A DNA stretch of 64,000 nucleotides from Marsupella aquatica (GCA_973895155.1 OZ316897.1:2867416-2931415); one strand, 5' to 3'. Positions 1 to 38,847 are shown, counted from the first letter of the stretch. The notes: generated by a model not told the origin, from the letters alone. Made by a program: numbers and translations.

Positions 1-3000
1 ATAACTGGATCTCTAGTAAACCATTAAAATCATCATTTCTGAGCTAAGCAAGCGATCTCTACCTTTCAGTGGCTGTGATGTACGATGTCCAAGAGCTACG
101 GTGTCGTTGTCACCGTTGTGTTTCACATCTGTTGGAACCATCATGGAGGCATTGGCATCGCCGGCAACGGCATTTTCAATCTCCATCGCATTGCACATTC
201 TGTTTACGTGTAGCTCTGCGATACAATGCATGACTTCGTTGGTTGACGAATTGCAGACATTAGGAACAATATGAGAGCTTTCCAAGCATTCAGAAGTCTT
301 CACGATTTCTGGAAGAGACTGATTCACTCTGCTATAGTGTCCCATCAGTAGGTTTTCCTGACCTCTGTTATTCTTCCCCATCCTTCTGGTTAGCTGGTAT
401 CAATAGTTAGACTTAGCAATAACCTACCTCTGTTATTATACTTTCCCATTCCCTCACCCAAAACAGGTTTTAACAGGCACGTCCCGAAGTTACAAAGATC
501 TCCGAGGCTGGAATGGTTCTACTTGGGACGAGTTTGTTGCTGTGTGGAAGCGGGTTGGGTGTAGGACAGAACGAACTTCAAAGACTGAAAGAAAGAGATC
601 GGAAAATATATAAACGTCGTTCGAATGTCTAGAGAAAAGAATGACAACCGTGGTTGTACGAGGAATCCTACCAAGAAATTATGATTGTTGTGAGTAAATT
701 ACAGTACCGGGCATTCTAGGACCAGGTTCGGGATAACTACAGAGCATTCAAAGTAACCTCACCATCTGGCAGATTCCGCGACAGTCTCAGAGCTGTCTGT
801 TGCCTTTATAGTAGTTATAAAGGAGAACACATCAGCCCTTACAGTCTTTCCCAGCTCGAATCCCTGCTGAAGCTTTAACCACTACGTTTCATGGATTTCG
901 GAGCACATCCTACAAACGACAGAACCCTAAATATACCGAACCCAGCAAGGACTCACCTTTATACCGAGCTCCAAATCTCCGCTGAATTTCGTCGGCATTC
1001 GAAGCCTAAGACGTCGGCTGGTCAGAGAAGTCTCGTAAGCTAGCTCTGCAGACGAATCAGCAAAGAAATGCGGACGGGTCATGGAGTCCCCTGAAGCGAC
1101 CCTGGAAGGCAACCGTCGTAAAATTCAAGAATTGTGGCAGACTGCACGGATCCCCATAGCTGTCCCTCAACGCTACTCCATCCACAACCTCGAGGAAAAC
1201 CCTCCCGTTCCCAGCTGCTGCTGCTGCCGGATGGAGTACCATCCTCCTCCCAACGCCTTATTTCACGCAGCAATCGTCTTCATCAACATCGCCATTACAG
1301 ATCCGTCCACTGGCAAGACTTTGTACGCTTCAATAGTAATACAAATTAGGTCTCCTCCGCCTACAAGTATTCGTCAGCTTGCTTTGTCTGGAGTCTGGAC
1401 CTCCCGCGACCGAGCGACGACCGCACCACGCGAAAGCATTCCGAGCCCGACGTAAGATAACATTAAATGAGGGCAATTGCGAATCGGACTTAAGCAACAA
1501 AAGCAATCAAGCGACTAATAAGTCAAGTTCCCTGCACCGATACACCACACCGCCCGTTGCGATCAGCAACGCCAGAGCTGGAATCATGCCCGTCGCTCGC
1601 GCATATCGAACTTCACGGAGTGTGTAGTACTCAGGCAGCTGCAATTGCCGTCGAATGAATCGATAATACTCTCGGCAAGAATCATTTAGCAGACCGAACG
1701 GAGCTTCCGCCAAGTACAGATTTAGCAAACCACATGATATCACCGAGGCAGAGGAAAGGGAATTCGGGCAATGTCTTTGGGTGCTTCAAAGTTAATCTCG
1801 ATGACACACAGTAGTAGTTCAAGTACCATAGCTCCGAATCCCACGGAGAGAGAGCATCACACAGAGAACAAATCGAGGTTGGAAATTGCATCAGGACAAC
1901 CATTTCAAATTTCAAATGCCGGCCGAGTGATAGGGGATTTGAACTGCCGTTAGGTTCGGGTTTTCGCTCGGCCTACGTTCGGCTTGCCGCCGGCGTACCG
2001 ACGGTAGCACTTTGCGTCAGGAATGGGTGATGTATCAGTGTTTAGCAGAGAGAGAGAGGGCGCCAAAGTTTGGTTTACTGGTGATTAGTTTGTAATAAAA
2101 AAGGAATTATTTTAATTTATCGATAAGGGCAAAAAACCAACAGGGTGACTATCAAACCTGTACTTGGTTTCTTTTTTTTTTCTTTTTTTTTTCTTTTTTT
2201 TAAGTGAATGAGCCAATGGCCAAAAACTTTATTCCAAAATAATGGGCAAAAAGAGCCAACAAATAGCCTGCCTGGGAGGAGGAGGCAGGGAAGAAAAGAG
2301 ACAATTAGGGGAGGCCAAAAGAAGGGGCACTCCCAGAGAAACGGGAGAATGAGACCAAACTGCCTGTAGGGGGGGAGGCAGAGCAAGGGGGGAAAGGAGG
2401 GACCTCGGAGAAATGAGAGAAAAGAGAACCAGACAATCAATGCCCCGTCCAAAGTCGGAAACTGCCTGGAACCAAACTGGGAAAGTGCCTCCACCGATCA
2501 ATCACTGGCTGGCAATGAACAGAACGCTAGTCACCTCTGCACTTGGCGTGGATTGCCGGAAACATTAATTTTTATTAGCCCACCAATGGTGTGTTGCATA
2601 CTTACGAGTGCAATAGTGTTGTTGTTGAAGTCAGATTATCATTGCGGTCGGATTGCTGTTACGAAACAGGTTTCTGACATTAAAACTATAACTTGGTCGA
2701 AGTGTCACCCTGCATTAAATACCACTTCCAATAGGGCGTCTCAGAGTAGAGGTCGGGCCCGTTAACACCGGTCCATAACTTGGAAGTTACGGACTACTCC
2801 ATAAGGGTTATGGGAGGCCAAAACCGGCTCCCGTAATTTTGTGTCGTGACCCTAAGACGTAACCCGTGAACTGTAGCTAACGGGAGGGATGGCCCAAGTT
2901 GAAGCGCGAACACTGTATGCTTTTTTGAAGATCGTTCAAACTATGACTGATGCGGGCGTGTCATGCTCGGATTTTCAGTACTCCCGATCTGCATCTTCGA

Positions 3001-3337
3001 CTTGGAACTTGGTTCACTCGATCGCTAACTTCGACTGGGAGTCTTGGTTCACTCGATTGCTCATTTCGAGAGCACAGACAGGGCTTTGGTGTGGACCTAG
3101 CTGGGAGACGTGGGTGCATCGATTCTGGAATCGGCAGGCGATCGAGCTTGTGCAGGCGATTGAGCTTACGCAATCCAGAAATCCAGCGGGGCTGCAAGGA
3201 GCCATACATGCAGTGCCAGGTGAAGTCTGTTTTCTGAAGCTTGTGTTGTTGGAATGCATTTCGATTACTCGCTCATTCTGGTATATTTGTGCGCCGTGTT
3301 TCAACTGAGTAGTGCTACTGCATTGCAGAGTTTGAGA

Positions 3338-4024
3338 ATGGTTTCATGGACTACACTAGGCGAAGTGGAGGAAAGAAGGGCCGCAGGAGCCAATGAAGTT
3401 TTCTCCCCTTCTCTAGTGTGGGTAGTGAACTATGTGGCAACTAATCCCCATCCTCGTAGATTCGTCTATTTAGCTTGTCCTTACAGACTGAAAACAGGCC
3501 GAATGTGTGCGAAATCCCTTGAATTGGGACCCAAGTGTGACCACATGCTTCCAGGGAGGTATGCTTTCAGATTTGGTGTACGCATCGTTGACGCAATTCA
3601 TGGGGACGTGAAACCTGTCACTGCTCAAGTCTGGGATGTTGCAGAAATTCTCCTAGATTGTGATGCAATAAACTTTTCGATGTGCACAGAGCATGCCCAG
3701 ATCGAGTTCTTGCATTCGATTATGCAGGAGTCACCGAGGGTTAAGATTTGGCTATCTGTTTATGATTTTCAAATCAAAGTCCAGCATTTGACATTCTTTG
3801 ACGAACGTCCTGTAGTGCATCTCCCTCCCACCCAGGCATGCTTTGTTTCTCCACAGTGTAATGTGAAGCACAAGGAGCGAGTCACTCCACATTCCCCTAT
3901 AGGAAGCCACGGCAGCACATCGGGTAGCACACCAAAGAAAACAGACAAAAAACCAGCAAAACCTGTTGGAGAAGCTATAGAGGACCTCGTTCGGTCTTTG
4001 AAGTTTTATGATTTGGATGGCTAG
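3338..4024 (+). CDS. RPA1 C-terminal-like zinc-binding OB-fold (ssDNA-binding) protein
   Basis: FVYLACP..C.K.L....C.H....RYAFRFGVRIVDA...AQVWDVAEILL follows the Rep_fac-A_C pattern (YxAC..C.K...C...RY.l...i.D.tg...v.fd..ae.ll). First in-frame ATG at 3338. Confidence 0.6.
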   Translation: MVSWTTLGEVEERRAAGANEVFSPSLVWVVNYVATNPHPRRFVYLACPYRLKTGRMCAKSLELGPKCDHMLPGRYAFRFGVRIVDAIHGDVKPVTAQVWDVAEILLDCDAINFSMCTEHAQIEFLHSIMQESPRVKIWLSVYDFQIKVQHLTFFDERPVVHLPPTQACFVSPQCNVKHKERVTPHSPIGSHGSTSGSTPKKTDKKPAKPVGEAIEDLVRSLKFYDLDG

Positions 4025-4339
4025 TGTGTGTTATGTGTGCATATTTGTTTTGTGCCCTTTGGTACATCCGTCATAGGGAAAAATGTAACAGATTTTTATC
4101 TAATAATTGATTTACATCTTCTATTCTTGTCACAACAACCTATATTTGCTTACGACAATGAATTGCTCTCTGTCATTGGAATGTGATATATGTTTATTGT
4201 TGATGTTACTCTCTGTGTCATTTCATTATGCATGGATTCTTTTTATTCCAGAATTGGTATGAATTCATCTGACATGTTGCCTACTTCTCTAGTGTTCACG
4301 ATAGAACAATTCATTCCAACAACTCCTTGTGGAGAGACG

Positions 4340-5843
4340 ATGCCTCGACAATCATACCGACAGAAAGAATTGCAGGCTGTGCGTGATAAGTTGGTCTTGA
4401 ACATTCTTCTGGAAAGCTCAGATGATGACTTGCAAACCTCAGGTAGCGATGTGGACTCCCTAGATGAGTTCAGACTATCTAATTTGGATTCAGACCATGA
4501 TCTCTATTCATCAGATGACTCTGAGGACGAGGCCGACATTCTTGAATTGGAGGGGGCTCCACATGACCTGATGGAGACTTTGTATGCCATCATGGAGAGC
4601 ACCAGGTTTTTTGTTGACAAGAAAGTAACAAGTAAATCAAGGGAGTTTGCTTTACAGTATTTTGACAAGCTCCCTCCATTAATTTTTCGACAGATGACTC
4701 GGATGGACAAGGCATCCTTCTTTGCACTAGTTCACCTGATTGACCAGCACCCTGTTTTCTACAGCGACTCACAAAACCAACAGGCCCCCGTGGAGTGGCA
4801 ACTTGCTGTTATGCTTGATCGGTTGGGCCATGAAGGAAACGGTTCCTGCCTTAATCGATTGATTCCAACCTGGGGCGTAAGTAATGGTTCTCTATGCAAC
4901 TTCACAAATCATTGTTTCCATGCCCTGGAGGATGCACTGAAGGAATCCCTGACATGGCCTGCAAGTGCTGAACGCAAAGCAATTGCTCAAGAGTTTTCCA
5001 CAAAAGGTTTTCCAGGCTGTGTTGGGCTCATTGACGGTACCTTAATTCCTCTTTCTCAGCGGCCAGCAAACTCTGGGGAATGCTACTTTGATAGAAAGTG
5101 CCGCTACTCAATCAATGCCCAGGTGGTTTGTGACTACAAGCGAAAGATCTTATACTTATTCACTGGTAAGATGCTTTTAACATCTGACCTCATTCTCAAG
5201 GCTGCCGGTATTTTTGTATACCCTAGAGGTTTTATGTTTAGCAAACTAAGCTATGTTCACATGGGTTTGGTGTCTTGCAGGATTGCCCGGGTCCGTGTCT
5301 GATCTGACATGCTACAAAAGGTCATCGTTGTATCGCAATCAAGCTCAAAGGCATTTATTTAGCCGTGGTCAATATCTTTTGGGTGATAGTGGATATGAGC
5401 CCATGGATCACATGGTTTTTGCATACAAAAGAGCAGATACCAGCCAGGAGCGGGAGGACTTCAACATGTGTGTAGCAAAGTGTAGGGTAACCAATGAGCA
5501 TTGCATTGGTGTTTTGAAATCTAGGTGGCATTCCCTCAGAGAGATGCGTACCCAACTGAGATCCAAGAAGGAGATTGCCTGGCTAATTCGATGGATTATC
5601 ATGTGTGCACGATTGCACAATTTTGTCATTACACGTAATGACATGTGGACCGAAGAAGATTCCAAAATTCTTCTGGACAATGACTCAGATAGCGATGCAG
5701 AACGGGAGGAGCAACCTACTTTGCCAAACATTCGAAGAAGGCGTCCTTTACCACCTCGAACAACCTTGCAAACCATTATTATGGAATATGCACTTCAATT
5801 TCACAAGCAGCCAGGGGGCTGCTTGAATATGCGTAGCAACTAA
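4340..5843 (+). CDS. PIF/Harbinger DDE transposase (HARBI1/DDE_Tnp_4-like), 2 exons (4340-5165, 5281-5843), ~462 aa
   Basis: FRQMTRMDKASF, FPGCVGLIDGTLIP, YSINAQVVCD, GLPGSVSD (across the phase-1 GT-AG intron 5166-5280), YLLGDSGY, RVTNEHCIGVLKSRW, CARLHNF. DDE triad intact. Confidence 0.93.
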
Positions 5844-6455
5844 GTTCCACATTAGTGTAGAAGTATTACATTCTACCTCCCGAATCAATTATTTTGTAGT
5901 ACATAGCACTTGGCTCATCCAATCGATGACCTGGTGCTATCTTTGTATGTGGGAAATCTTCTGCAAATTGTTATAAATAAATCAGGAACTAGTGAGTTCC
6001 TTTGTATCTTGTCAAAAAACATGTGTTGTGCCAATTAAATTTTGTAACTGTGGTCTGCTCCACAATTGTTTTATACAAACTTGTAGCCAACAATCGCTGC
6101 ACTACTCAACTTCAATTTTTCCAACAACACTTTTAATTTCTTGCATGAACAAGGGATTGGGTGTACTTCTGCAAATTTTGGGGAGTTCATTTAGACAATC
6201 ATCTATCTAGTACGTAGGACATCAATCTGAATTACAGTTTAGAGTGTAGCCCATTATGCCTGGATTTACGTGTGTATGTGTTCAGAAGTTTCTTGTATGC
6301 ACAAATATGCTCCATAGTCCCTTCGGGTGCAAAATTATGTCATTCATACTTGTGCAAAACCGTGTCATTTATTGAAGATCAAGAATAATGATTGTGACAT
6401 TTATAGGAACCCACCATGTGACAACAATTACTCTAAGCTACATGTTATCCTGCAT

Positions 6456-7951
6456 CTACTCTACGTCTACAATGGGCAGCAATGTCCTAATCTCGTCAGG
6501 AGTCTTGGAGCTGCCAAAGAGTGTAGTCAACAATGCCATACGTTGAGCCGATTTTGACATCTCGACTGCATGATCTTGCTCAGCCTTAACCTTTTTAAGG
6601 GCATTTTCAGATGCAACCTGCTGTAGTACAAGCTCATGCTTCCGATCGAGACGTCGCTTTAGGAGAGCTTCTTGACGAGCCTCCAATCTAGCAGCACGAC
6701 GTTCTTCAAGGTCCTGCAGTTTCCACTTGTCTCTAGAGTGGATTAACTCTTTTCGATAGTCTGATTTTTGGGCGATCCTATCTGCATAGATTGCTGAGAA
6801 TGATGGTTTCCTGTTCTCTTGGGCACTCTTTTGCTGCCTATGCTGCTGTCTTGGTACCCTTCGGAGTTGGTGGCGGTCTCAGTGGAGTGGCTTGGACATT
6901 GTCCTTGCGAGGCTGCAAGGGATTGTGAGCACCAGTTGCACTGCCAGTGGGCAGAGGCCTAGTCTCCCCACTGTCCACATTCACATAATTCTTGCACTGG
7001 TGGCACTGACATGTATCAGAAACAATGTGGATGTTGTGTGCAGCAATACCCTCTAGGTGTTGCCAGAAATTCTCACGAGAGGGCGGGTTCCTGAGGGTGT
7101 CAGGCGTCGGTACATCTAGGGGACTGGTGTGCATCGATTCTACTTCTGATTGCACAGGTGTATCTGGAGCAAGGCAATCATGGAAGGAGTATTACTTTAA
7201 GCAAGGATATCATGATTCTAAAAGAACAAATGTCGCTCGCACATATTATGAATTGAGAAGCGAGTGGAAATGTCATTACAAGTAACATGTACGTCACATC
7301 TTCATTGCAACTAAGGCCACACTTTCTTACCTTCAAGGATGATAGTAGGGGTGTGAGCTGGGATAACATCTGGGTAAAGGAGTTCCTCGCCATATTGCGA
7401 GTATCCCTCGGTGTCACCTGACTCCTCCAGCAGGACCAGGTCAGTCTCATAAATTCCAACATCTCCAAGGACTTCTGGAGCAACATTGGGCCTCTCTCCG
7501 TAGAGGGTATGCATGCGCTCAAAGTATGGACAGAGTCGGTTCAACTTGTCCTCCAATGTAAGGCCCATTCTGAGGTCATCTTCGGTGAGGCCTCCACCCG
7601 ACTGGAACTTCACGTCTCTGGCATCCTTGTAACGCTTCACAATCGTTGAAATCTTTTTGTCAAATTGGGTGCAGTTATCTCTCGCGGAAATCCATGGTGT
7701 TGCAATGCAGCCAACATCTGACGGAAAATAGTGGCCTTGCTCTGATACTTGCCTCCCACCCTCGTCTTCTTGCCTGCACCGTGAATGGCATTGAAATTTT
7801 CTGGAATTTCCAAGTAGCTGACAATGAGCTCGTAGTCTTGGTCTTTCAGACGAAATTTGTCTGCCGTCTCCTTGCCCCTAGTTGGAACAGGTCATGGAGC
7901 ATTGAATGTTCCTCGACCTCTAACATATCCAGCGCTACCTGAATTTGCCAT
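6456..7951 (-). pseudogene. Harbinger partner (Myb/SANT-like DNA-binding protein with coiled-coil C-terminus), disrupted
   Basis: Convergent with the transposase. ATG at 7951; YLEIPENFNAIHGAG...KRYKDARD..SGGGLTEDD..LEDKLNRLCPYFERMHTLYGERPNV. In-frame TGA at 7892-7894, frameshift near 7642, intron 7164-7330, and another frame change near 6840. Confidence 0.75.
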
Positions 7952-9009
7952 GTGAGCTGAGAGGAATCGGTGAGCAGGAGGCGCAATCTGTTGAGCACTT
8001 GGACTCCAAGGCTGAAAATTGTAAAAAATCCCTAGCGAGATTGCTAAGCCCGTCACTGAATGCGAAGGTGCTGGAAAGCCAGAATCATCCTCAGAACACG
8101 ATTTCGGACCGACCGAGAAGTGTGTCGGAGTTCTCGTTTAGCCCGATCCCGTTTTTTTTCTAAGGCAATGCAATGACCGATAAAACTGGCAAAAACTCTC
8201 CGAAACGCCACTTTCCTCCATTGCATCGCCGCGGGAATGCAGGGAGCGATACGTGCATCGGGTTTTACATTCCGTCAGTGAAAAAGTCCGAACTGTGAGT
8301 AACTTGGTCCGAACCGCGTAATCCAGGAACGACCACGCACTAACCCAGGTAAAAGGGGAACTTAACCATGGTTAAGGGGAAATTAACCATGGTTTAGAGC
8401 GTCTCCTATATAAAGAGGAGCGGGCTGCCCATAAAATGTTTGCTTTCACCAGAGCAAATATCTCCTGACTGAGAGCAAATACCAAACTCCCATCAAGTCT
8501 TACATTCCTCCCAAGCGATTCAACTCTTTCTACCGAAAACCCGATAAATTTATCGGAACAGCCATTCCTGTTCAAGTTCTCCATGTAAGACTAACTAGTC
8601 ATTTAGTGTAAAATGTCCAGATCCGAGCGGACTGCGATAAATTTATCGCATTTTGCATTGCTCTGTTGCAATCATTTGATCCAGTGTGTTTAGAGAGGTG
8701 TTGCCTTCATTCCCATAAATTTATCGGAGTCTCCATTCCTTTCATGGAAAGAGGAGTAATTGAGAATCCGATAAATTTATCGGAGTTGTCATTTTTGTGA
8801 AAGATTGAATTCAGGGCTTAGGTGTTTGAGGAAGTCATATTTTCAATTCGAATGCGGAGTGCGATAAACTTATCGCATCCTCCTGTGAGAATCATTTTCC
8901 TTTGTTTTGTTTGGAGACTCATCTTCATCTTTGATGTCGCAGTGTTGTCGGGTTTAGGAGGCACAACGGAAGGTCAATTGCACTCCGTGGACAACAGGTA
9001 TTGTGACAA

Positions 9010-9339
9010 ATGGCTGTCTTCCTTGAAAATCATGTCAAACGTGCACGCCGGTTGTACAAGAGACTCGTGCGACTCAAAGTTCTCCCCATCGGTATAGGAG
9101 CATTGTGGATGGGTGGTACTGATCCTGGAGATAGGCAGAATCCTCTCCGCATTGAATTCTACGGAATGAATGATGTAGGAGTTCCAATTCGTTCGAGGTT
9201 GATGTTAACGGCGTGTTTACATTCTTTGGAGTTTTCTTGTAACTATTGTTGTCGTCGTCTTGATAACAAGTACCACAAACAGGCTCACTTCTGTTGTAAG
9301 ATTTGGAACGAAGACCCTTGGGTGAACCTTTCACGATGA
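9010..9339 (+). CDS. Small Cys/His-rich orphan protein (109 aa)
   Basis: ATG-initiated ORF in the TE cargo cassette with CNYCC and HFCC motifs. No recognisable family. Confidence 0.4.
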   Translation: MAVFLENHVKRARRLYKRLVRLKVLPIGIGALWMGGTDPGDRQNPLRIEFYGMNDVGVPIRSRLMLTACLHSLEFSCNYCCRRLDNKYHKQAHFCCKIWNEDPWVNLSR

Positions 9340-9527
9340 GTGTTTCGACCTTTTCATTGAGGCGCATCTTGGAAGGACATATTTAAATAAACAAGTCCTA
9401 CCCTTGCGCAGCGAATATAATACGTCACGAGTCCTAATCGTTAAACTGTCATGCAGGGTTGGTACTGTGTTTGGTTACACCTGGTGATTGAAGGTATTTT
9501 TATTGGTGGTTTTGGTAGCTCTGCTTC

Positions 9528-10076
9528 ATGGCTGCATCGGAGAATCTAATCGTTGCAAAGATGGGATCCGTTTTAGCCCACGAGCGTAGGAAATATATTC
9601 GAGGAAAAGTACCCGGTGTGGAATGCGGAAGTTTGTTGAATGGACTTCCCGATGAACTCGTTGAATCTCACATTTGGCCCCTCCTAGCCTTGTCTTGCAC
9701 ACAAGATGAACACCTTGGCCTTGACCTAAAACTTCTACCAGAAGAACGACTGACTCGAATGAGAACAATCATTTGTCTTGGAGCCACCTCGAAGAAATGG
9801 AACCATCTTGTTGTTGGTACACGATTTTGGGCGCTATTGAAATATGCAGTCCGTGAGATCAATGACATAAACAAAATGCTCGCAAGCATTCCTAATGCCG
9901 TCCTTCTCTCAAACCTACATATTGCTAGGGTCTTCCGAGAGGAAACTCATTTCCTCCCTCCCATAGATATGCTTGGGTGCTTCTCGTATGACCGATTAGA
10001 TGCATTTCTTAGAGTTTGGGTAAATCTTGGAGAAAGCGGGAAGCGGACAATTCTTGCATGGCATGGACGAGTCTGA
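9528..10076 (+). CDS. F-box-like protein (182 aa)
   Basis: LLNGLPDELVESHIWPLL...IICLGATSKKWNHLV matches the F-box consensus LPxEl..Il..L...l..l..vsK.W..l, with an insertion. Confidence 0.6.
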   Translation: MAASENLIVAKMGSVLAHERRKYIRGKVPGVECGSLLNGLPDELVESHIWPLLALSCTQDEHLGLDLKLLPEERLTRMRTIICLGATSKKWNHLVVGTRFWALLKYAVREINDINKMLASIPNAVLLSNLHIARVFREETHFLPPIDMLGCFSYDRLDAFLRVWVNLGESGKRTILAWHGRV

Positions 10077-10368
10077 GTGGATGAGGCATTGCAGCGAACA
10101 TCCGATAAATTTATCGCACTCCTCATTCCTCTAGTCGATTTTGGGTGCTTGTAAAGAAACACTTTGAATATAATTGACTCTGCCTCCCCTGACTTCGGGT
10201 TGTGTGGTCCAGAGTGTATTTTTTTGCGCCTCTTCGGACGATTAGCTGACAAGTGCATTGGCTTCACAGCCCGTTATACAAGGTACTGTAAAGTTGGATG
10301 AAACTTGTAGAATTGTAATTAGTATGTTCTCCAAAATTTATTCCTGATTTCTATTCGGTGATCAGGCC

Positions 10369-11082
10369 ATGCTCGAGCGACGCATTTTTGTACCCTTCCC
10401 GGATCCTCCAGAATGGGGGAATGGAGCCATGCTGGACCAGCTAAGGAGGCTGGATGAGTCACTAATTTTAAAGATATGCAGGCTGGTAGTAAAACCATTT
10501 TACCATAACGCATTTCACTTCTACGTAGATCAGGTAGGGGGAGAAATTTATATTCGGTGGGATAGATATGTTGGATTTTCTAGAAGAGTTATCCTACTCT
10601 TTCTGAAAACTGGTGCAGTAAGACATTTTATACTCCACTATTGTCATGTTGTGAAGGGCAATCCTGCTTATGAGCCCGAATTCTATGTCGACAACAGACG
10701 TAGAGCATTCGATGAGATTCAAGATGTGATTGACGAGCTGGACAATCCTCTTGCCACCGAGTTTTTTATTGACACTGGTGGGAAACTATATTCATACAAG
10801 ATTCGTCAACTCCCCCCCCAGCCGGTCTGTGGGCTCTTTAACTTGATCTATGTAAGTTGCCTGTGGACGAACGTCCTTGCCAATGGTGAGATCTGTCCAT
10901 GAAGAATAAATGCTTGTTGTGACATTCCGTCACGCCGGTATTCAGTAGCAGTAGTGAATCCTGAGACTGGTGAAGTTGATTTCCATTGGCTGTGGGCTTA
11001 TGATCATTGCGTCACTCATATTCCCCAATGGCCCAAGAAGCGGATCGAACGCTTCGCTCTGGCGAGGTTCAACTATGATTAG
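10369..11082 (+). pseudogene. Orphan protein (~237 aa) with one in-frame TGA
   Basis: ORF 10369-10902 continues open in the same frame after TGA 10900-10902 (RINACCDIP...FALARFNYD) to TAG 11080-11082. Confidence 0.55.
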
Positions 11083-11302
11083 GGTTTAGGTTTAGGGGTT
11101 AAGGTTTTGGATTTAGGGTTCCGTAGCTGATTCTTCGACCTGTACACTCGGCCGTCAATTTAAAGAAGGCTCACTTTTGCGATAATTTTATCGGTCTCTT
11201 TGTCCTTGTGTGATGAGATGTCGTGTCCACATGTGCTATGAGATTGGCGGCGATAATTTTATCACTCTTTGCATTGGAATTTGTTTATTTACAGACTTTT
11301 CC

Positions 11303-14300
11303 ATGGCTGCTAGTGGAAAGAGTGGATCTGCTGAGGCAGAAAGTCTCATGACAAGCCTCACCAATGCAATTTGGACAAGTGAAGACATTTGTGAAGAGAT
11401 CAAGTGTATCAAGAAGTCATGGTACTTCCATGACGCCAGATTACAGTCCACGGGTTTCGAAGACTGTGTTACCCCAATCCTTTGGGTCCAGTTGCAAAAA
11501 TTGGTGAAGGTTAATGTTTCGTATGGCCCTGTCATTGCTATTGCCGTCGTCGAGTTCATGGTTGGCCACGGGGAGGGAAAAGTGTTGACAGAGGGCCTTA
11601 GTTTCTTGACAATGTGTGGGCGCAAGGGTTTCACATCTCTCATTGTTACTCTCGATAACTTTGATGAGAAATCGATGGACAGTTATCCAGAAGATCCCCT
11701 TGTTGCCGATGTTCGGGCAACAAGAGAGATGAATGTTATGGGTTCGGCTTGGATCAGCCAGTATGTGCAAGATTGTGATGCCATCATGCTTCCAAGGGTG
11801 AACGCAGAGTACAAGAGACTTGTGGGTGAAGAGTTCAAACCTGTCCGCAAAATTGTTTTCAAGAAACCAGGTTCAAGTGGAAGCGGTGGTTCTAATGCCG
11901 ATAAAATATCGGGGCGGAAAGAACCATTGCAATCCTCTACACATATTGACGTGGACGAACCTACAACTTCTGGTCGGGTTTCGGGAAGTGGAAAAGGGAA
12001 AGGGAGAGGTAGCGGCAGGGGAGATGCCGCGGGAACCTCTGACGGTGGGAAGAAGAGCCAGGAAACTAGCGGTAGTGGGAGAGGCCGGGGCAACCATCGA
12101 GGACCATCCGTTAAACCAAGCGAAAGTAAAGGATCCGAGGGATCCGGGCCATCTGGTTCTGGACTTAGCACAAAGAGGAAGAGGACTGGCTGGACTGAGA
12201 CGGTGGCTGCAGAAGTAGATAGAGCTCCGTCAATTCCATCAGTTCTAGTCGCGGTTCCTACGGCGCCATTGGTAAGTACTACGTCGTTGTACTGTTTAAC
12301 AAACATGAAATCCGATAAAAATCTCCCTGTTTATTTCCTGAATTGCGGATTGTGGAGTTATGTTGAACAAATGCGAACTCCGATAAAAATCTCGCAGTTT
12401 CTTTCCTTAATTGAATTTGCAACGCTTTTGTAGGCTGATCAGGAGGAGGAGACGGCTCTTTCGATGTATGAGACGGACGCGATCAAGGCAGAGCTCAGTC
12501 TTCTAATGCAACGAAGGGTGCAAAGGACAACTGTGCTTCTGCATGTCGACAATCTCATATTTGATGAGGAGGGGGATTTGACAACTTTGATTAGACCAGT
12601 GGATAGATTGCATGTGGAAAATATCAAGATACTTCTCATGAAAAACCCCACCAACTTCAGTGCCCCGTTCGTGCTGTGTGTGGATCCGAAGGATTGTCCC
12701 ACAACCGCAGATTGGGACATCCTGAAGTCAAGGGTATGGAAGTATAGAATTATTGGAGGGAATCATGGTGCTCGGGCAAAGTCCGAGTTGTTTAAAATGT
12801 ATGGGAAGCAAATATATGGTGAGCTGGAAGCTTGGGTTTATGCTGGGCTTACGAGATCCGAGGTCCGAAAGTTAGGCTTCCAGCATAACTATGACCAGGA
12901 GTATCGGAAGAACATGACTAAAATTGACCAAGTTCGCGCTTGTCACAATATTTTCCTTGAAATGGGTGTGGGCTCGACTAAAGATGTCCGCGAAGCATGT
13001 TGTCAAGAATGCATGATGGAGTACACGTCAGGAGTTCGTGACTCCATGGCCAAACATGATCCGGCTTTCCAAATTGCTTTCCGAACAGGTGAAATTTGGG
13101 ATCTTCAGGAGCAGATTTTCCAGATGTGGGAGAAAGGTATTGTCTTAGGACAACCCAAAAAAATTGTGGCAACGACGAACGCAAAGGGAAAGGTGAAACC
13201 TTTGACGGTAAGGGAGATTAAAATGAATAAACTTGCTGGTGACCTCAACTTAAATTCATTTCGAGGTCTCCAAGGACTGTCAAATAAGGAGCATGTCAAG
13301 CGTCTCTTGAATAGGGTTATCAGGAAGGTGATCACTTTGGATCAAATGCACAAGGAAGGTGAGAAGTTGAAAAAGCTTGCCAAGGTGAAGAAACTATTTT
13401 TGCAGATATCTGGTCAGCCAGATTGGGCAACATGCAGAGAAATGTTTCCCAACAAAACAGATGTCTCGGTCCTTGGCATATGGGCGGAGAAATTGAGTGA
13501 CGCGGTAAGCATTCCTCTCACAGCATGCTCTATCGCGAGATTTTTATCGGCTTTAGCATTCCTTTGTTGGTTTCTAAGCGATTGCATCTATCAGCTAGCG
13601 TGCTCCATCGCGAGATTTTTATCGGCTTTAGCATTCCTTTGTTGGTTTCTAAGCGATTCCATTTATTGGCTAGCGTGCTCCATCGTGAGATTTTTATCGG
13701 CCTTAGCATTCATCTCACGCTATTCTAACTGTAGATGTGTCTGACATTCTTACAGCTGAAGATTAATTCAAAAAGGAAAAGCAAAGTGGTTCCGGCTGTC
13801 ACTTATAATTCTGCGGGGGAGGTTATTGTTCCCTCAGCTGAAATCCCTTATGTGTTTAATAATTTTGTGCTTGCTGCAATCGATAAGTACAATCGGCTGA
13901 GGTCCTTAGGCGAGGGCACAGCAGAAGTGTTTGAACAAACATGGAAAAATGCAGACGGGGATTCTTTTCCCTACTATCTCCATGTTGGTGATGTTTGAAT
14001 TTTGGATTCTTTTGTTCAGCCAAGGGCTTACACCCTTGCGGTTGCGGATATTCCGTATGGTTTTAATGCTCCTGGTTCGGAGTTTGATGAAGTGGCCTTC
14101 ACAGAAAAGGACATTTTAGACATGTTGACAAGTTTCTCAAAGATGACGACCGCTAAGCAGTGGAGGTTTGTTGTGATCCATTCACTACAACAAACGCATA
14201 TGGTGATGTCTGCACTGGAGAGTGTATGCAACTGTGGGGTCGAGGCTGGAATCTGGGAGAAGACTAACATTCATGAGCGTCCCGTTGGAGCTCGATTGGC

Positions 14301-14868
14301 ATGGGGTTTTGAGAACTGGTCGATAGGTTTCTATAGCGAGGAAGGCATTTGGAACATGAACATGTACAATTTCCAACCGGATGAGTCTCGCGTCAATATC
14401 ATCAAGGTTCCATGTGTAACCAAGAAGTCCGTTGATCCGTTGGGATTTGTTGTGAACCCATATCAGAAGCCTGTTGGTTTAGGGGCTTGGTTTGTTTCCC
14501 ATTTCTCTAAGAAAGAGGATTGGATTATTGATCTTTGTTGTGGAACCGGATTGACATTAGCTGCTACGCTCCTCAATTCTCGCCAGGGTTGTGCTGTTGA
14601 TAAGAGTTCTGCGCAGATTGGTTTTGTAAAATCTCGGATCATGATTCTGGAGTCAAACTGGAATTTATATGAAGAATCCCTGATTGAAGGGCACGGCGTT
14701 GAAGGTCATGAGATTCAACCACCAATTGCAGGCCAATTGGGTGTACTCGGGACATCGACTTACGTAGTTGAGGTCGTGAAGGAGACCAAAGAGGAACAAG
14801 AAGAAACTGAGGAAGAGCCTCCCAGAACACCAAATGAGGATGATCTCAACGACATGTTATTAGATTAG
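11303..14868 (+). pseudogene. ParB/Srx-like domain + beta-class amino DNA methyltransferase (N6_N4_Mtase-like) fusion, 3 exons (11303-12271, 12434-13504, 13756-14868), ~1050 aa, one premature TGA
   Basis: Two phase-0 GT-AG introns join the ORFs in frame. ParB signature IRPVD..HV..I...P.V....YRIIGGNHGARA. MTase motif IV ADIPYG is followed by PYQKPVGL..FSKKEDWIIDLCCGTGLTLAATL..RQGCAVDKS (motifs X/I). In-frame TGA at 13996-13998 in GDV*IL. Confidence 0.85.
13520..13715. repeat. Intronic 75-bp tandem repeat (~2.6 units), each unit with a GCGAGATTTTTATCGG palindrome variant
   Basis: Motif copies at 13535, 13610 and 13685 inside intron 2 of the ParB-MTase gene. Confidence 0.9.
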
Positions 14869-15104
14869 TTGCGTGTGCTCGTTAGGATAATGTCAATCAC
14901 CAATGAAGTTGTCGATAAATTTATCGACTTCTATATTCCATGAGGAAGAACCTTTGTCACATTTATTAATGCGATAAATTTATCGGACTTTGCATATATC
15001 GGACTGTCGCGGTGTTCCTGCTGGGGGAATGGAGTTGTCGATAATCTTATCGGACAGCATTGTATTCTCTAACTGGTTTGTCATTGCAATTATTTAAAAA
15101 AAAA

Positions 15105-15430
15105 CACTAGTACATATTAAGCTGATTTCCGATGCTCAATTTTTGCGAACAATCGGCGTCCGATTCTTTTAGCATCGGAAATTCCGATTATCAAAAAATG
15201 GCAATATGCCATACTCTCGGCTTTGGATATCTTCATTTCCGATATAATTGACAACGGAACCTTTCCGATGCGTTAAAAAACAGATCATATCCGTTAGAAA
15301 ACACATCGGATCCCTCAACAGAAACTTTGATTGATATGTCTGATGTTTTTTGTAACGAAAATGATGTGCGTTACAATATTGATCGGAAACTTTCCGTAGT
15401 TAATAATAACGGATATTATATCTGATTGTG
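15105..15430 (+). mobile_element. Possible CACTA element left end with TCCGAT subterminal repeats (truncated)
   Basis: CACTAGTAC at 15105 followed by many TTCCGAT/ATCGGA motifs. No matching right end found. Confidence 0.4.
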
Positions 15431-15435
15431 CTAAC

Positions 15436-15615
15436 ATGGCAAAGTCCGATGTTGGGAGAATGGGAAAGTCCGATGCTGGGAGTATGGGAAAGTCCGATGC
15501 TAGAAGAATGGGAAAGTCCGATGCTGGAAGAATGGGAAAGTCCGATGCTGGGAGTATGGGAAAGTCCGATGCTAGAAGAATGGGAAAGTCCGATGCTGGG
15601 AGTATGGGAAAGTCT
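15436..15615. repeat. 24-bp tandem minisatellite (~7.5 copies, ATGGGAAAGTCCGATGCTRGRAGW)
   Basis: Directly visible periodic array. Confidence 0.95.
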
Positions 15616-16137
15616 GGTTATGACAAAAAGAAAATTTTTGATTGTGTTAGAATGAAAAGTTTTGATGTGTTAGATGGGGTATGTGGTTGCACCGACATAC
15701 TCTTCCCAAAAGATGCAATCATTCTTGCATGCATGAATAACTTCATACTTGAGGCAAATGGACTTGAGTGTTGTTTTTGCCTCATTCCAAGACCCAACAT
15801 ATTGTTCCCTTACGAAAATATGTGCTCAACATGCCAAGTCCAAAATACATCATCTAGAAGGAGGTTGCTTGTCCCATGTAGTCTTTGTTGCAAGTCCAAC
15901 AACAACATAGTTGATAAAAGATGAGACAATCAGGAGCCATTGACGCTGAGGCTTTGGAAGGACCAAAATATCATCCATAACTAATAAGCCATAATTATCC
16001 CATATCAAATCTAATGAAGGAGGGCTTTACTATCGATGAATGACCCCTGCCAGATTTCTATTGGTTTCTCCTAGGGGAATGTAATAGGGTAACTAGAATA
16101 GGTCACTTGATGCAAAGATCTAATCTCATGGCCGACT

Positions 16138-18250
16138 TCAATGCCATTTGTGGTGCGACCCAATGTACCGAACAAAATCCACCGTCTCCCCCCAATCGAT
16201 TGTCATTGAAAGATGTTTGGCATGGAATACGGACCGAGCACTTCCATCTTCGAGTACTCTAGTAATCCGAAATTGTTTTTGGGCACTTATGCCGTGGAGA
16301 GTACGTAGAACCTGACCATCCATATCCTTGTCATTTGCTTGATCCTTGTCTGACACAAATTTCTTGAAATCGGCAACCTCGTCGACGAAAAATATCTTTG
16401 TCGTAGGATTGTAGGATTCCTCTATGATTGCTGAAAGAGTGTCCAACCGGAAAGCTTTCCGCTTGTTCAATTTTGAAGAAAACTTGCTAAACATTTGATC
16501 AATTTGATCATGGGTGTGCCCCACCAATAGGAAACCAACCTTTATTTTCTGGAAAACACCTATCTCCACCAACATATTCAAATATGCCATAAGATATTTA
16601 TTCTTGTTTTCCCAAGCTGTGTTATCAAGCTGGAGGTAAAGCACTAGAGGGAGCATACCTTCCCAGGTATTCAGAATATGCTGGATAACGTGGATGGTCA
16701 GGTTGCTATCATTGTGAATATTTGGATAGTTCAAAAAAACATTTGAACTTAATTGTTTGTTGAAGATCAAACAACCCACTACGTGTACGGGGATGAAATA
16801 CTTTTCATCCATATTCTTCGGACATCGAATGAAATGAGGTAACTCTATCTTCTTTTGATCCATTCCATCAATACAGATGCCCAAATATTTCTCCGGACTC
16901 TTGTAACATTTGCTCCGGTGCTTTGCTAACTTCTCCCTCTCGACTGCTTGTGCCTTCCGATGCTCGTTTAGCAATGTTGAGAATTTTCCTACAACAATAA
17001 AAATTTTTAGGACAAAACATGATAACCGCAATGTTGAACCCTGATAGCGATAAATTTATCGGGTTCAGTATTCAAACACGAGACCGTAATGATAAACCCT
17101 GACAACGATAAATTTATCGGGTTCAGTATTCAAACACAAGACCGTAATGAAAAACTATGACAGCGATAAATTTATCAGGTTCAGTATTCAAACTGTTCAA
17201 ACGATATATTCACTCACATGGCCAAAGAAGAAGCACATGAATACTCAACCCGATAAAATTATCGGGAGTAACACACAGGTTTAGAAATTTACTCTTTTCT
17301 GCTTCGAGTGTTGCCTTGTCACAGAGTGCTTTGAATTCAGTACACGGGGCGCAGGTGGAGAAACGGCTCCTTTTGGGGATGCGCACGTGAGGAAACTCCT
17401 TGTTCCAAATGCGAACAAACCATGAATATGTCATGCCTTGTTCTTGGCGCATTAGAGTTTCGGACTGGAAGGCATCAAAAACTTCTATTTTTGTCCAATT
17501 ATCACGTAAATGAAAGATATCCTTGTTGGGGAGACTCTCGACATTTGTGGAAAAAAAATCATCCAGCCATTGGACGAGACCAAGATGTGCGGGTGATTTT
17601 TCTCGACAAACTGTACCAATCTGTATCCGAGAAAACATGTTCTGCGAGATTTTTTGGAGACGATTATTTCCCAATGAAAATAATTTCTTAAAACCACTTC
17701 GACAAAAGGATCTACCGCTAACTGAGTAACCACTTGCACCAGCATGCCCACCCTTCACACATCCTCTTAGAAGGACGTTCTTCTCTGGGTAGGATAGCCC
17801 ATAGTAATAAGTGAGTTGTTTCGTCACGGCTAGCAGACCCAAATTCCGCAGACAGTAATTATCACAACACGAATACTTATGAATTTCTCTCATTTTGTTT
17901 CTATTCAATTTGTCATTTATCACATTGTCTTTCCTAGTAATTCGGTCCCTATCTTTTTTACTAGGCTCATTTGACTTCTCTACAACCTGAAATCCGTTCA
18001 TAACATTGGCATTTTCGGGTCCTTCAAGTGCCTCGCGAATAGATGCATCACTCTCTGCTGAGCTACCATCCTCTATAGATCTCCTTGACGCATTTAGAGG
18101 GGCACTGAATAGACGACTATAGCTATTCTCTTCGACAGCTCCTTCTAAACATTCAGACACAACTTGTGCTATTATATCGGATTCTCTATCTCCTTCCTCA
18201 TCTTCGTCCTCCGATGCACTCGACTCATTTGAAACACAATTGGACTCCAT
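16138..18250 (-). CDS. Sola-type (DUF7869-like) DDD transposase-like protein, 2 exons (18250-17293, 16988-16138); possibly 3'-truncated and with an upstream exon
   Basis: CCDNYCL, FCRSGFKKLF, FSTCAPC, ICIDGMDQ, LYLQLDNTAWENKN, FLLVGHTHDQIDQMFS. The phase-1 intron 16989-17292 joins EAEK-R-KFSTLL. Confidence 0.78.
17033..17195. repeat. Intronic 58-bp tandem repeat x3, each unit with CGATAAATTTATCG or a 1-mismatch variant
   Basis: Motif copies at 17047, 17105 and 17163 inside the Sola-like gene intron. Confidence 0.9.
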
Positions 18251-18939
18251 GGCTCTCTATACATAACCCGAACGCCACTAAGACCTCTCCTCGATACTTG
18301 GAGCTTGGAACCAATGACAGTCCGCCCTTGAGAACTTGGAGATTCTGGATTCGCACGTGCAGTCCCAACGACTCCGCGAGCTGCTGGAAAATTGAGCACT
18401 TGTTCACCACGATTCCCACGGACCATTCGAGAAAGGGCCAAGTCTGGACTTCACAGTCCGATTCCCTCACTTGCTCGCACATCCAGTCCAGGCAATGCAA
18501 AGACCGATCGCCGTATCGGTCTTTGTACTTCTGTGTCCCGATCCTCACTCGGAGACTGAAAGATCCATCGTTGAACTTGTGTTGAATGTGGCAACTTGAA
18601 TGCCGACTGCGATACACGTATCGGTCGCCGGATACCCTCTCCATAACCCGGGATGGATGGCCTGAAGCGACGTCTCGGACCTAAACCTGGGATTGAAAGT
18701 TTCTCATTTCTTGGCGATGGAACGCTCAAGAGACGACGCTTCTCAGGTTTACTAGGCGACACATAGTAAGCACTGGGCTCAGGACCAGAACTTGCATCAG
18801 AATCTGAGTCAGAGATTTCGGGCACTATTTGCTGTGAGAGAGGTAGAGCTTTAAGTATGCGACTTGGAAAACAGCGAGCGACAAGATTAGGAGAGGATTC
18901 AACTGAACTGGAAGGTGAATCTGTGTCTGATTGAGACAT
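18172..18939 (-). pseudogene. Ser/Pro/Arg-rich low-complexity ORF, possibly a 5' exon of the Sola-like gene, with one in-frame TGA
   Basis: The MSQSDTDSPSSS... frame continues through TGA 18451-18453 into ORF 18172-18441. Confidence 0.35.
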
Positions 18940-21900
18940 GGCTATCCGAGACACTATGGGGCTTTGCATTCCTCCCACAATCAGGGAAAACGAAAGGCTC
19001 AACGGACAGAATGTTGCTCCAAGAACACAACTCCCAAAACTCTACTCTCGATAATGACACCAAAAACTTATCGGCGGTGGCCCTTTTATAGTGTCTGTTG
19101 AGGGGTTGGCCCACGTGTCCACTTTTGATTGGCTGTCACCCTAAACGACAAAATAGCAGAAAAGGGTATATTTCTTGGATTTCCAATTTCATTCTCACAC
19201 GTGCATCGTGGCAAAATTATATAGTTTTGAAATTGAAGCGATAAATTTATCTGATGTTGGTATTGCAAAAGTGGTTCCTTCATATGGAAGTTGCAATTTT
19301 GAAATTGAAGCGATAAATTTATCTGATGTTGGTATTGCGAAGAGTTTTCTTCATATGGATAGGAATTTTGAAATTTAACCGATGAACCGAAGGATCTTAG
19401 TATTGTCGACTAGTATTTTTGTCGCCCGTAGTTTTCGCGATAATTTTATCGGACTGCGCATTGCTGTTGAAAGAATGGCATGTTGACTATGGTCACTTGC
19501 GGAGGTAACTGGTCAATTGCGGAGGTAATTGCAAGGTAAATTTGATGAACCGTGCAGTAATTCTTATCGACTGTGATGTAAAATATTTTTGGTAAATATC
19601 CAAAAACTGAGAAACTTGAGATTGGGTCGGAGTTTTTGTGGCTCAAATCCGGAGTCCGATACAGTTATCGCACTTGGCTCGAAACATGGATATGGATTTA
19701 TAGATAAGACCTTTCATATATCTTCGGAGAGCGTGAATATGAGGTCGAGGAGAAAGTTTTTCGGATCTAATTGTTCCTTGGTAATATGAATGTTTGTTAG
19801 CATGAATTTCATTGGTTTTGATCATTATTAAATTTGTTGTTTCAATCCGAACTCCGATACGAATTACATTATTTCCCCAAAAACGCGTTTTTGATGAAAA
19901 AAACTGCCGATTTCGCGAGATTCGGCGGAAAATAAAAATACACTTCTCGTTTAGAGGAAATAGTTCTCGTTCGGTCCAAAATCGTGTTTCAGGCTTATAT
20001 GTTGGAGCAGCGGGGCTATCTGGAGCCATCGTCATCACAGGTAATTTTGTGCTTCAATCTGTGATTGCCTTATCTTCGACGCACAACGATCTCTGGACAT
20101 AAATTTCTTGAGCTTTGCAATGCTGAAATCAGGGCTCCATGAAGTACATAGGACGCACCAGTTTGAATTCATTTTAAAGTTTGGTTTGAACTCCATCATA
20201 TTCGGGATGTGCAATGGAGGGCATCAGTTGCTTTGGACTTAGAACGGCCAAGAATCGGGAGGACGTGGCTTCTACAAAAGCCTCCTGACAGCCCGTGGTC
20301 CGAGAGGGAAGGTAAGGGCGCTCAGCTTTGAGCGGGTATTAACCCGTAAGTCAAGCCTAACGGAGCGGGTCAAAGCTGCCGCCCTGCCCAAGTTGGAACC
20401 CGTAACTTCATTTACGGGATGAGCAGTAATACCGCAACTTTTTGCCGTCCCGCTACTTTGAGACGCCCTAATGAAGTAAATGGTTGCAATGTGAGAGCAT
20501 CAGAGCAAGGTGTAGAAGGTGTAAATGGACAGGGAACAGTTGGGCCAAGAGTTGGGCCAAGAGCTGAAGTGAGAGCTAGACCGAGGCTGATTTAGACTAC
20601 GGGAACACGGTGTGCATAGTATGGGGCGTAAAGACAATGACACATGTGGCTGACAAGGAGGGGAGGGGGGGCAGGAGGGGGGGAAGAGGAGGGGAAGGTA
20701 AGAAAGGAGCATGGTTGGGGAGGCTGGGAAGAAAAAACAATTAAAATGAAAAGGGGGAAGAAAGAAGGGTTCACTGTTTTATTATTATTTTCTGCCCAAT
20801 ATAAGTTTTTTGCAAGGTGTTGTTGATGGGGAAGGCTTAGATAGAACACCTGTCCAAATCTTATGAGAAAAAAACTGTCTAGTAGTGCCATTTTGGTTGC
20901 AAAGAACATTAAGCCAAGGGGCAATGCAAATATAAATCAATAATGAAACAAAAACAAAAAAAAGGTCCATGCAAACAAGAGAAATAGGTCAGATGGTGAA
21001 TAGAAAATATAATAGCATGCATGCAGGCAAGGATAAGTAAAGTTGAAATGAGAGCCAAAAAGAAGCTACTCTAATTATGTGATATTGTTTCTAGTCTGAG
21101 CAAATTGAACATTTTGTTGCATCAATTAAAGATTGGGCAGTCTACTCAATTCAAAGTCTATCAATCCATAAATTGCTCTATTCTAAAGCTTATAAAGCTA
21201 TATCAATTTGGCTGATGACTTATGAAATGCAATAAAATTTCACCCTACTTGATTTTGGATTCCAATGACAAGTCCACGATAAGGCCTATGATTGCATTAC
21301 ATCAGTGATTTTTGTCACAAACACAAACAATGATATTTACAATGGCAAATACACATCATAGTTTGTGATTATTGCAACAAAACAGTTAGATCTAGGAATG
21401 GTGTAAACTTATGGCAATTGGAAATCAACATGCCAACTAACGAAGAGCACTGGCACAAAAATAACCTCTTGTAGTTACCATTTTTATTTGCATTTTGAAT
21501 TACAATTTAAATTATATCTTTATACTAGTAAACTCATTCACTTGAAAATAAACAACGACTACCTGTAGTCATTGGATTTTATTGATTGGTTGATGCACTT
21601 CCTGATGCACTTGAGCAATCAATGGTAACAAACTAAGAAGATGGTAAATGACAATGCAAAATGGTCACAAGAAAATATTCATGTCATTGGATTTTATATT
21701 GTGACAAATGAGATCAAATCCTTATAATTAACAATGACAGTAAACACATACTTGGATTTCATAGAGTGATGGATGAGATCAAATCTTGATAATTAATGGT
21801 GACCATGTGCACTTTAAACCAACCATACTTTAAGTTTTCCTTTAAGTTTGTCTTTCTTTTTATAATTTTTATGATATTGTTTTAATGCTACTCAAGTAAG

Positions 21901-38610: not shown

Positions 38611-38847
38611 TTTCAAGAAAGAGACTGTATGAAGAAGAATTGAAGATCGGAGCCGAATCTTGCTGAAACGTTGAAGTCCAACTCGAACGACTGGTGATCG
38701 AGCTCTAATCAGTAGAGGAGCAAATGATTTCACTCTAACTGATCCAGCTGAAGAGAAGCGTGAGCTGCGTTTATAATCACAAGTCGGGAACTTATAGAGT
38801 CACTCCAGCTGAACCACTACTGTAGATTGCACACTTTATTTTGTAAG

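Follow-up and report, generated by a model that had tools for sequence, protein, structure and literature searches.

A three-exon gene on the forward strand of a 64,000-nucleotide stretch of the Marsupella aquatica genome (GCA_973895155.1, OZ316897.1:2867416-2931415; hereafter the window, with positions counted from its first letter) appears to join a ParB-like DNA-binding region to a prokaryote-type DNA methyltransferase (methylase) within a large transposon. We read this gene (11303-14868) as the pseudogenised accessory gene of a cut-and-paste DNA transposon of DUF7869 type, similar to Sola1, in which the ParB-like part would target the methylase to the element, and we assign this reading a probability of about 0.72. 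An intact family member measures approximately 1050 aa; behind an N-terminal domain peculiar to the family and a linker rich in Gly, Ser and Arg come an N-domain and helix-turn-helix of ParB/Noc-like type, then a helical spacer, and finally a beta-class amino-methyltransferase that would depend on S-adenosylmethionine. The value of the locus lies in the description of this family, and not in its being an active source of methylation.

A spliced ParB-methylase gene with an interrupted third exon

The coding sequence was delimited from open reading frames (ORFs) and by reading the sequence itself, and consists of exon 1 (11303-12271), exon 2 (12434-13504) and exon 3 (13756-14865, with a TAG stop at 14866-14868), which together give 323 + 357 + 370 = 1050 codons. 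Both introns are in phase 0. Intron 1 (12272-12433) runs from GTAAGT to TAG and holds two copies of a 53-nt repeat with CCGATAAAAATCTC, and intron 2 (13505-13755) runs from GTAAGC to CAG and holds a 75-nt tandem repeat in three copies (13522-13746) with GAGATTTTTATCGG. An in-frame TGA (13996-13998) divides exon 3 into a first part of 80 codons (13756-13995), which lies ahead of the methylase core and is kept in the relatives P0036, P0011 and L002, and a second part (13999-14868), which encodes the putative methyltransferase domain and an acidic C-terminal tail. Searches for homologues were run piece by piece, with exon 1, exon 2 and exon 3 on either side of the TGA.

Comparison with the homologues indirectly supports the view that exons 1-3 form one spliced gene. 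Exon 2 has 16 homologues (50-79% identity) whose ORFs are approximately exon-sized and whose likeness to the window ends directly past the motif KLxDQ; most of these ORFs continue with a V, as a GT donor would give, and in several of them a Q stands immediately ahead of the exon-2 start, pointing to a CAG acceptor. On contig L001 the equivalents of exon 1, exon 2 and the first part of exon 3 are contiguous and intronless, whereas contig L002 has an intron-sized gap at the position of intron 2 that is absent from L001. The ParB-like part and the methylase share a single uninterrupted ORF in P0088 (981 aa, contig L004), P0187 (1059 aa, contig L007, from a Tara marine metagenome) and P0073 (902 aa), as well as in the units of the Chara braunii protein P0042 (3e-34), and the fusion is therefore both real and old. 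A preliminary description of the window, made from the sequence alone, had proposed a single spliced gene with two phase-0 introns and a product of ~1050 aa; the GT..AG introns and the codon count bear this out, and the homologue ORF ends, the intronless L001 and the single-ORF relatives lend it support.

Two of these relatives have peculiarities of their own. L001 (Logan SRR6371231, 3117 nt) has an in-frame stop where its relatives have a Lys, and its methylase similarity ends after 60 residues; it could derive from a pseudogene copy by transcription and splicing, or else come from an intronless lineage. The Chara gene model on L003 (BFEA01000570.1, 10001-39538) yields a P0042 of 1825 aa that merges two ParB-methylase units lying ~26 kb apart (at ~10262-12025 and ~36145-38211), and this annotation probably fuses two transposon copies.

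A predicted beta-class methyltransferase domain

The part of exon 3 that follows the TGA is, on its modelled fold, a beta-class amino-methyltransferase domain of prokaryotic type. Its AlphaFold2 (AF2) model, with a predicted local distance difference test score (pLDDT) of 88.6 and a predicted template-modelling score of 0.80, had CcrM as its best match in Foldseek (E 6.6e-13, template-modelling score 0.61), and a family profile built from 37 sequences matched M.BceJIV (E 5.5e-20) and also M.RsrI, DpnA, CcrM and M.MboIIA among the entries of the PDB. The motifs stand in the order typical of the beta arrangement of prokaryotic amino-methylases, as the preliminary description had recognised: motif IV, the D-I-P-Y of the catalytic loop (14047-14058; residue 17 of the piece, aligned with the DPPY of M.BceJIV), comes first, followed by a Q-K-P motif of beta-class type (14464-14472; K157 nearly invariant, aligned with the TQKP of M.BceJIV) and by motif I, the D-L-C-C-G-T-G of the S-adenosylmethionine (SAM)-binding loop (14530-14550; G182 and G184 nearly invariant). 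Motif IV takes the form D-x-P-Y across 150 family matches, in which Q-K-P and G-x-G are nearly invariant; distant members of the family have DPPY, and SPPY occurs in one distant match only (P0163). The search with the Pfam N6_N4_Mtase profile (PF01555) suggested in the preliminary description gave a divided answer: the window copy scored 22.8 bits, under the cut-off of 26.7, and the relatives passed with 33-66 bits (P0047 65.7, P0163 56.7, P0088 54.5).

The same description had held that the target base could not be read from the sequence. Because of the Asp-type motif IV and the ranking of profile and structural matches, the sequence does lean towards adenine N6, which we consider the most likely target in intact members. 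The description had also pointed to kinship with writers of N4-methylcytosine (4mC), namely N4CMT of bdelloid rotifers and DN4MT1 of Marchantia, and such a relationship would make the domain an N4-cytosine writer. These enzymes do belong to the same Pfam family and share the beta-class fold, and Foldseek matched N4CMT and M.PvuII as well, with E between 6e-10 and 5e-9. The family profile, however, gave E values of 1e-20 to 1e-14 for N6-adenine enzymes and far weaker ones for the N4-cytosine enzymes (N4CMT 1.5e-6, M.PvuII 3.4e-5), and motif IV of the window begins with Asp rather than Ser, the residue that Iyer et al. linked to N4-cytosine enzymes when found in this first position (PMC4738411) and that is present in MpDN4MT1 as TSPPY (bioRxiv 10.1101/2021.02.12.428880). 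Kinship of this sort is accordingly weak, and we regard an N4-cytosine writer as quite improbable.

Relatives of the gene were identified in Chara braunii (e.g. GBG75370.1), the fern Adiantum nelumboides (MCO5606960.1) and Ginkgo biloba (Gb_37443), and the remainder are from metagenomes of soil, freshwater-type and marine origin. The ratio of nonsynonymous to synonymous substitution rates (dN/dS) between exon 3 of the window and contig L006 was 0.13, a value to be taken as approximate given a dS of 1.58, near saturation. It indicates that the ParB-methylase family is under purifying selection, and the catalytic and SAM-binding motifs are retained. The conservation of these motifs also bears on whether the domain could be a catalytically inactive reader of DNA or SAM, in a protein that only binds DNA. 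An inactive domain would account for the unusual Pro-to-Ile replacement in motif IV and for the sub-threshold Pfam score of the window copy, but the Asp, Pro and Tyr of motif IV, Q-K-P, G-x-G and the acidic residue after strand 2 (in AVDKS) are all kept, from Chara, the fern and Ginkgo to the metagenome relatives, and the low dN/dS likewise argues for a functional constraint; we think an inactive reader rather unlikely.

Neither exon 2 nor the methylase piece had a match among 50,697 phage records (tblastn), and the searches point to no particular phage or bacterium as a direct donor. At its C-terminal end the protein has a conserved acidic tail that ends in DDLNDMLLD (14839-14865), with EEDLNELLLD as its counterpart in P0036 and ELNDMIGN in L002. 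The tail slightly resembles the EAR-type (DLNxx / LxLxL) motifs by which plant proteins bind co-repressors, a resemblance that we mention as speculation.

A predicted ParB/Noc-like fold in exon 2

Structural comparison supports a model in which exon 2 folds as a ParB/Noc-type N-domain and helix-turn-helix, followed by a helical tail. All top Foldseek matches to the AF2 model, which was built from 17 sequences, were ParB, Noc, KorB, PadC or sulfiredoxin (Srx) structures (best E 1.2e-4, probability 1.0). VIA comparisons of the same model gave PadC (Z 9.7, root-mean-square deviation 2.6 over 100 aa), Caulobacter ParB (Z 9.0, 2.7 over 98 aa) and sulfiredoxin (Z 6.8), and a match to Noc (7nfu_B, Z 8.6) that extends over 204 residues and spans both the N-domain and the DNA-binding domain. 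The ParB/Srx fold named in the preliminary description is upheld by these matches, despite the failure of the Pfam ParBc search (see below). Profile and model alignments place the stretch corresponding to the helix-turn-helix of ParB (Spo0J) at approximately 13232-13348: the best PDB match of the exon-2 family profile, although weak, was to the Spo0J helix-turn-helix region (E 0.095), with profile positions 262-302 aligned to residues 152-192 of Spo0J 6sdk, and the Pfam profile HTH_ParB matched faintly in three of the 17 sequences (best E 0.043).

The same description had taken IIGGNHGARA as the ParB motif and the domain as a nucleotide-binding one. The motif GGNHGARA is indeed present (12755-12778), is nearly invariant in 17 homologues and occupies the site of the ParB GERRxRA and the sulfiredoxin GGCHR; it differs from the canonical GERRxR patch, and GGNHGAR is closer to GGCHR than to GERRxR. 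Since two of the three GERRxR arginines are gone, CTP binding cannot be assumed, and of the proposed nucleotide-binding ParB/Srx domain it is the fold that stands.

Upstream of this region, exon 1 encodes a conserved N-terminal domain of ~190 aa and a linker rich in Gly, Ser, Arg and Lys, both as previously described, and the linker includes a KRKR stretch that is a possible nuclear localisation signal. On L001 the ORF that precedes the ParB-like part shares 31-33% identity with exon 1. Exon 1 had no Pfam matches, and a word-based search returned no homologues of it among the 8000 candidates listed, which were probably taken up by matches to the low-complexity linker; an Atlas search with the N-terminal domain gave scores of up to 0.88 to clusters of plant-transposon proteins, which we treat as leads only.

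The carrier transposon and the state of this copy

The gene lies within an element of 11,894 bp (8095-19988) that is bounded by 25-bp terminal inverted repeats, the left (8095-8119) being complementary to the right (19964-19988) at 23 of 25 bases, and flanked on both sides by a TCAG target-site duplication (8091-8094 and 19989-19992). These ends support the view that a DNA transposon carries the gene. A target-site duplication of 4 bp would agree with that of Sola1 elements. Besides the ParB-methylase gene and all of the palindromes described below, the carrier holds a DUF7869 putative transposase gene on the reverse strand (16138-19002; ORF pieces 18451-19002, 17210-18250 and 16138-17031; Pfam DUF7869 3.5e-48) and two small ORFs. 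The ParB-methylase gene adjoins an opposite-strand DUF7869 gene on five contigs, the window, L002, L004, L006 and L007, and the two genes therefore appear to belong together.

This linkage also speaks to the idea that the host has domesticated or captured the gene and that transposons are no more than its neighbours. Introns, a linker of eukaryotic style and the KRKR stretch would all suit a host gene. Against this, the gene is enclosed by the inverted repeats and target-site duplication of the carrier and is paired with DUF7869 on the five contigs, and the very high word depth and the many variant contigs in four DNA runs imply many copies, making a host gene extremely unlikely.

The carrier itself appears to be inserted in a Harbinger-like element (2729-20473) with 24-bp inverted ends (2729-2752 and 20450-20473) and DDE_Tnp_4 ORFs (4190-5843), which would measure ~5.9 kb without the carrier; as far as can be judged from this arrangement, the ParB-methylase gene is not Harbinger cargo as such. 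The two small ORFs of the carrier (9528-10076 and 10369-10902) are intronless and lie upstream of the ParB-methylase gene, and one of them has a faint F-box-like match (E 0.052).

The copy in the window is, to judge from its sequence, a pseudogenised one. The preliminary description had assumed read-through of the TGA in exon 3, and the comparison points instead to a nonsense mutation of an Arg codon in a decayed copy: the codon is CGA in L006 and encodes R in P0036, P0011 and L002, and the TGA represents a C-to-T change at a CpG, which ends translation just ahead of the methylase core. The neighbouring DUF7869 gene is truncated as well, being without ~250 C-terminal aa (tblastn covers residues 16-298 of the 545-aa ORF of L002). 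It is because of the nonsense TGA and this truncation that we consider the copy dead. The element is present in many copies, with word depths of hundreds to thousands in four DNA runs and many variant contigs, and the window copy departs from the majority of copies in run X1 mainly in having A for G (29 places) and T for C (21 places), as would be expected of a methylated, silenced repeat in decay. The stop codon, the truncated transposase gene and this decay make it unlikely that the locus is itself a vehicle or source of DNA methylation, as had been suggested.

In place of the 3' part of the DUF7869 gene, positions 15105-16137 hold unrelated DNA, and many contigs of other copies part from the window exactly at 15104/15105. 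Within this segment there are 24-nt tandem repeats (15397-15660), one frame of which reads as repeats of ~8 residues.

A functional copy could nevertheless be imagined if the TGA were read through, or if splicing led from exon 2 straight to the eighth codon of the methylase part by way of a cryptic in-frame acceptor. A CAG with a run of pyrimidines ahead of it does end at 14019, position 14020 is in frame with both exons, and the remainder of the 1050 codons is open. But the 80 codons that would be skipped are conserved in the relatives, where this CAG is an ordinary Gln/Glu codon position; to our knowledge land plants have no selenocysteine decoding; and the copy is decayed, with its transposase gene truncated. 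We consider it very unlikely that the window copy is still functional.

Palindromes and the self-marking proposal

The non-coding DNA of the carrier contains a 14-bp palindrome, CGATAAATTTATCG, in 19 copies with up to 2 mismatches (8542-19670), against 0.23 expected, and none was found elsewhere in the 64 kb of the window. The copies fall in promoters, introns and spacers (8542-8875, 10103, 11180-11264, 14913-15052, 17048-17264 and 19239-19670). Half-site variants are found in the introns of the ParB-methylase gene: the duplicated blocks of intron 1 (12293-12413) have CCGATAAAAATCTC twice, and the blocks of intron 2 (13522-13746) have its reverse complement three times, i.e. in opposite orientation. 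In L006, whose methylase is 68-73% identical to that of the window, an exact CGATAAATTTATCG lies at the same position in the 140-nt spacer past the stop, as the sole conserved block there. It was not found in L001, L002, L004, L007 or L008, and the distant L004 has in its spacers 15 copies of another AT-rich motif, GTAAAATATTTTCG. This pattern fits sites that would co-evolve with a DNA-binding protein encoded by the element, which may be either the ParB-like domain or the transposase.

The second of these candidates gives rise to a different account, in which it is the DUF7869 transposase that binds the palindromes, and the ParB-methylase acts elsewhere without recognising them, for instance on host DNA or against host silencing. 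Arrays of repeats bound by the transposase are found in many DNA transposons, and the palindromes cluster towards both ends of the carrier and in the intron and promoter of the transposase gene; moreover, L002 has kept the ParB-methylase gene with no CGATAAATTTATCG on its 6 kb. On the other hand, palindromes also flank the ParB-methylase gene directly on both sides, its introns hold the half-site variants, and palindromes are what proteins of the ParB family typically bind. Binding by the accessory protein has likewise been raised for red-algal proteins with a ParB domain and adjacent inverted-repeat arrays (bioRxiv 10.1101/2025.02.11.637652). Transposase sites are a possibility to be taken seriously, if not the one that we favour.

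If the palindromes are instead read by the accessory protein, as in the reading that we prefer, the following steps can be envisaged. The ParB-like part of intact copies would recognise the 14-bp palindromes that its own element carries in promoters, introns and spacers; this binding would keep the methylase on the element; and the methylase would mark the DNA of the element, most likely at adenine N6. The mark might then tell self from non-self, or regulate the expression or transposition of the element. A self-targeting mechanism of this kind is plausible. The stronger and more specific proposal, that intact members constitute a land-plant transposon self-marking system in which the ParB-like domain reads CGATAAATTTATCG and a still-active adenine-N6 methylase marks the element, is one that we put forward tentatively and with considerable doubt.

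Several observations weigh against a ParB-like part that directs a methylase to its own element. Motif IV of the methylase is D-I-P-Y, with Ile replacing the canonical first Pro of (D/N/S)-P-P-(Y/F/W), and we know of no D-I-P-Y enzyme that has been tested. The exon-2 model reaches a moderate confidence only (pLDDT 65); of the arginines of GERRxR, GGNHGAR keeps just the last (in an alignment with ParB made by eye); and Pfam ParBc, a profile search proposed in the preliminary description, gave no match with E up to 1, whether to the window or to the 16 homologues. The support for the splice junctions comes from comparison with homologues: no RNA run was found to contain the stretch, and the matching sequences from four runs are DNA contigs that span the exon/intron borders and show no joint at 12271/12434 or 13504/13756. 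Finally, the palindromes are tied to the ParB-like domain through co-occurrence alone and could equally be bound by the transposase, and L002 (52-55% identical) is without CGATAAATTTATCG on its 6 kb.

If self-marking were true, embryophyte transposons would possess a private epigenetic mark other than 5-methylcytosine, controlling their expression or transposition or shielding them from host silencing. ParB-methylase proteins of transposons have so far been mentioned briefly, and for algae only. The module is also present in streptophytes, in Chara, a fern, Ginkgo and this land-plant genome, where it appears to be under purifying selection, and its companions are the DUF7869 transposase gene and palindromes particular to the element, of which one is kept between diverged relatives. 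Its protein domains and the 14-bp candidate site offer reagents for asking whether plant transposons write N6-methyladenine or 4mC on themselves.

Elsewhere in the window, three host-type ORFs (37801-38733 on the reverse strand, 50071-51672 and 58165-59244 on the forward strand) comprise two 2-oxoglutarate-Fe(II) dioxygenases and one BAHD acyltransferase (Pfam Transferase 3.7e-81), a gene content in keeping with a land plant.

Comparison with known systems

Each half of the protein has known counterparts. Like ParB/Spo0J, Noc, KorB and PadC, exon 2 is predicted to have a ParB/Srx N-domain followed by a helix-turn-helix, and the element contains a repeated palindromic candidate site; unlike chromosomal ParB, it has no ParBc match and has GGNHGAR for GERRxR, and no C-terminal dimerisation domain is recognised, its place being taken by the helical spacer and the methylase. 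The methylase domain resembles CcrM, M.BceJIV, M.RsrI, DpnA/M1.HpyAVI and M.MboIIA in its fold, in the order of motif IV and then motif I, in Q-K-P and in the G-x-G loop, and differs from the CcrM/M.BceJIV group in its low identity (13-20%), in having D-I-P-Y rather than DPPY, in being joined to a ParB-like part and to regions of eukaryotic style and in being encoded by a spliced gene. With MpDN4MT1a/b of Marchantia and N4CMT of bdelloid rotifers it has in common an N6_N4 methylase ancestry of prokaryotic type in a eukaryote, but those are host genes with a Ser-type motif IV and no reported ParB domain, and their profile match is far weaker than that of the N6-adenine enzymes. A 2016 survey of eukaryotic adenine methylases described other ParB-linked clades, and not this one (PMC4738411). 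DUF7869 is mentioned in none of the papers that we found, and none of them describes a ParB-methylase gene in land plants.

Closer parallels are found among algal transposons. In the red alga Bostrychia moritziana, the Plavaka accessory protein PAG3 combines a ParB-like domain with a 2-oxoglutarate oxygenase, and PAG2 an N6-adenine methylase-like domain with SET (bioRxiv 10.1101/2025.02.11.637652; Curr Biol 2025); tandem inverted-repeat arrays lie beside the ParB-like gene, and self-binding and self-modification have been proposed (bioRxiv 10.1101/2025.02.11.637652). The element described here shares with PAG2/PAG3 a transposon-carried ParB-like domain, a methylase that is here probably of adenine type and repeated sequences nearby, and differs in that the ParB-like domain and methylase of Plavaka reside in separate proteins and in that its superfamily is of the Plavaka/KDZ-EnSpm type.

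The brown alga Ectocarpus provides the nearest counterpart in Sola1-1_Ec32, a 21.5-kb Sola-1 transposon with a 1104-aa ParB-plus-methylase accessory gene (PMC12477816; Genome Biol 2025;26:320). That gene is opposite in strand to the transposase, and its authors propose that the product binds and modifies its own element (PMC12477816). The present gene shares both domains and their order, is of 1050 codons, is carried by a large DNA transposon (11.9 kb here) and is convergent with a DUF7869 gene; the likeness is one of domain order and gene layout, and DUF7869 may correspond to the Sola1 transposase. It differs in having a land plant as host rather than a brown alga, in its 14-bp element-specific palindromes and in that the copy seen here is broken. 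The locus is, in short, a land-plant example of a gene design that has already been reported, and not a new system.

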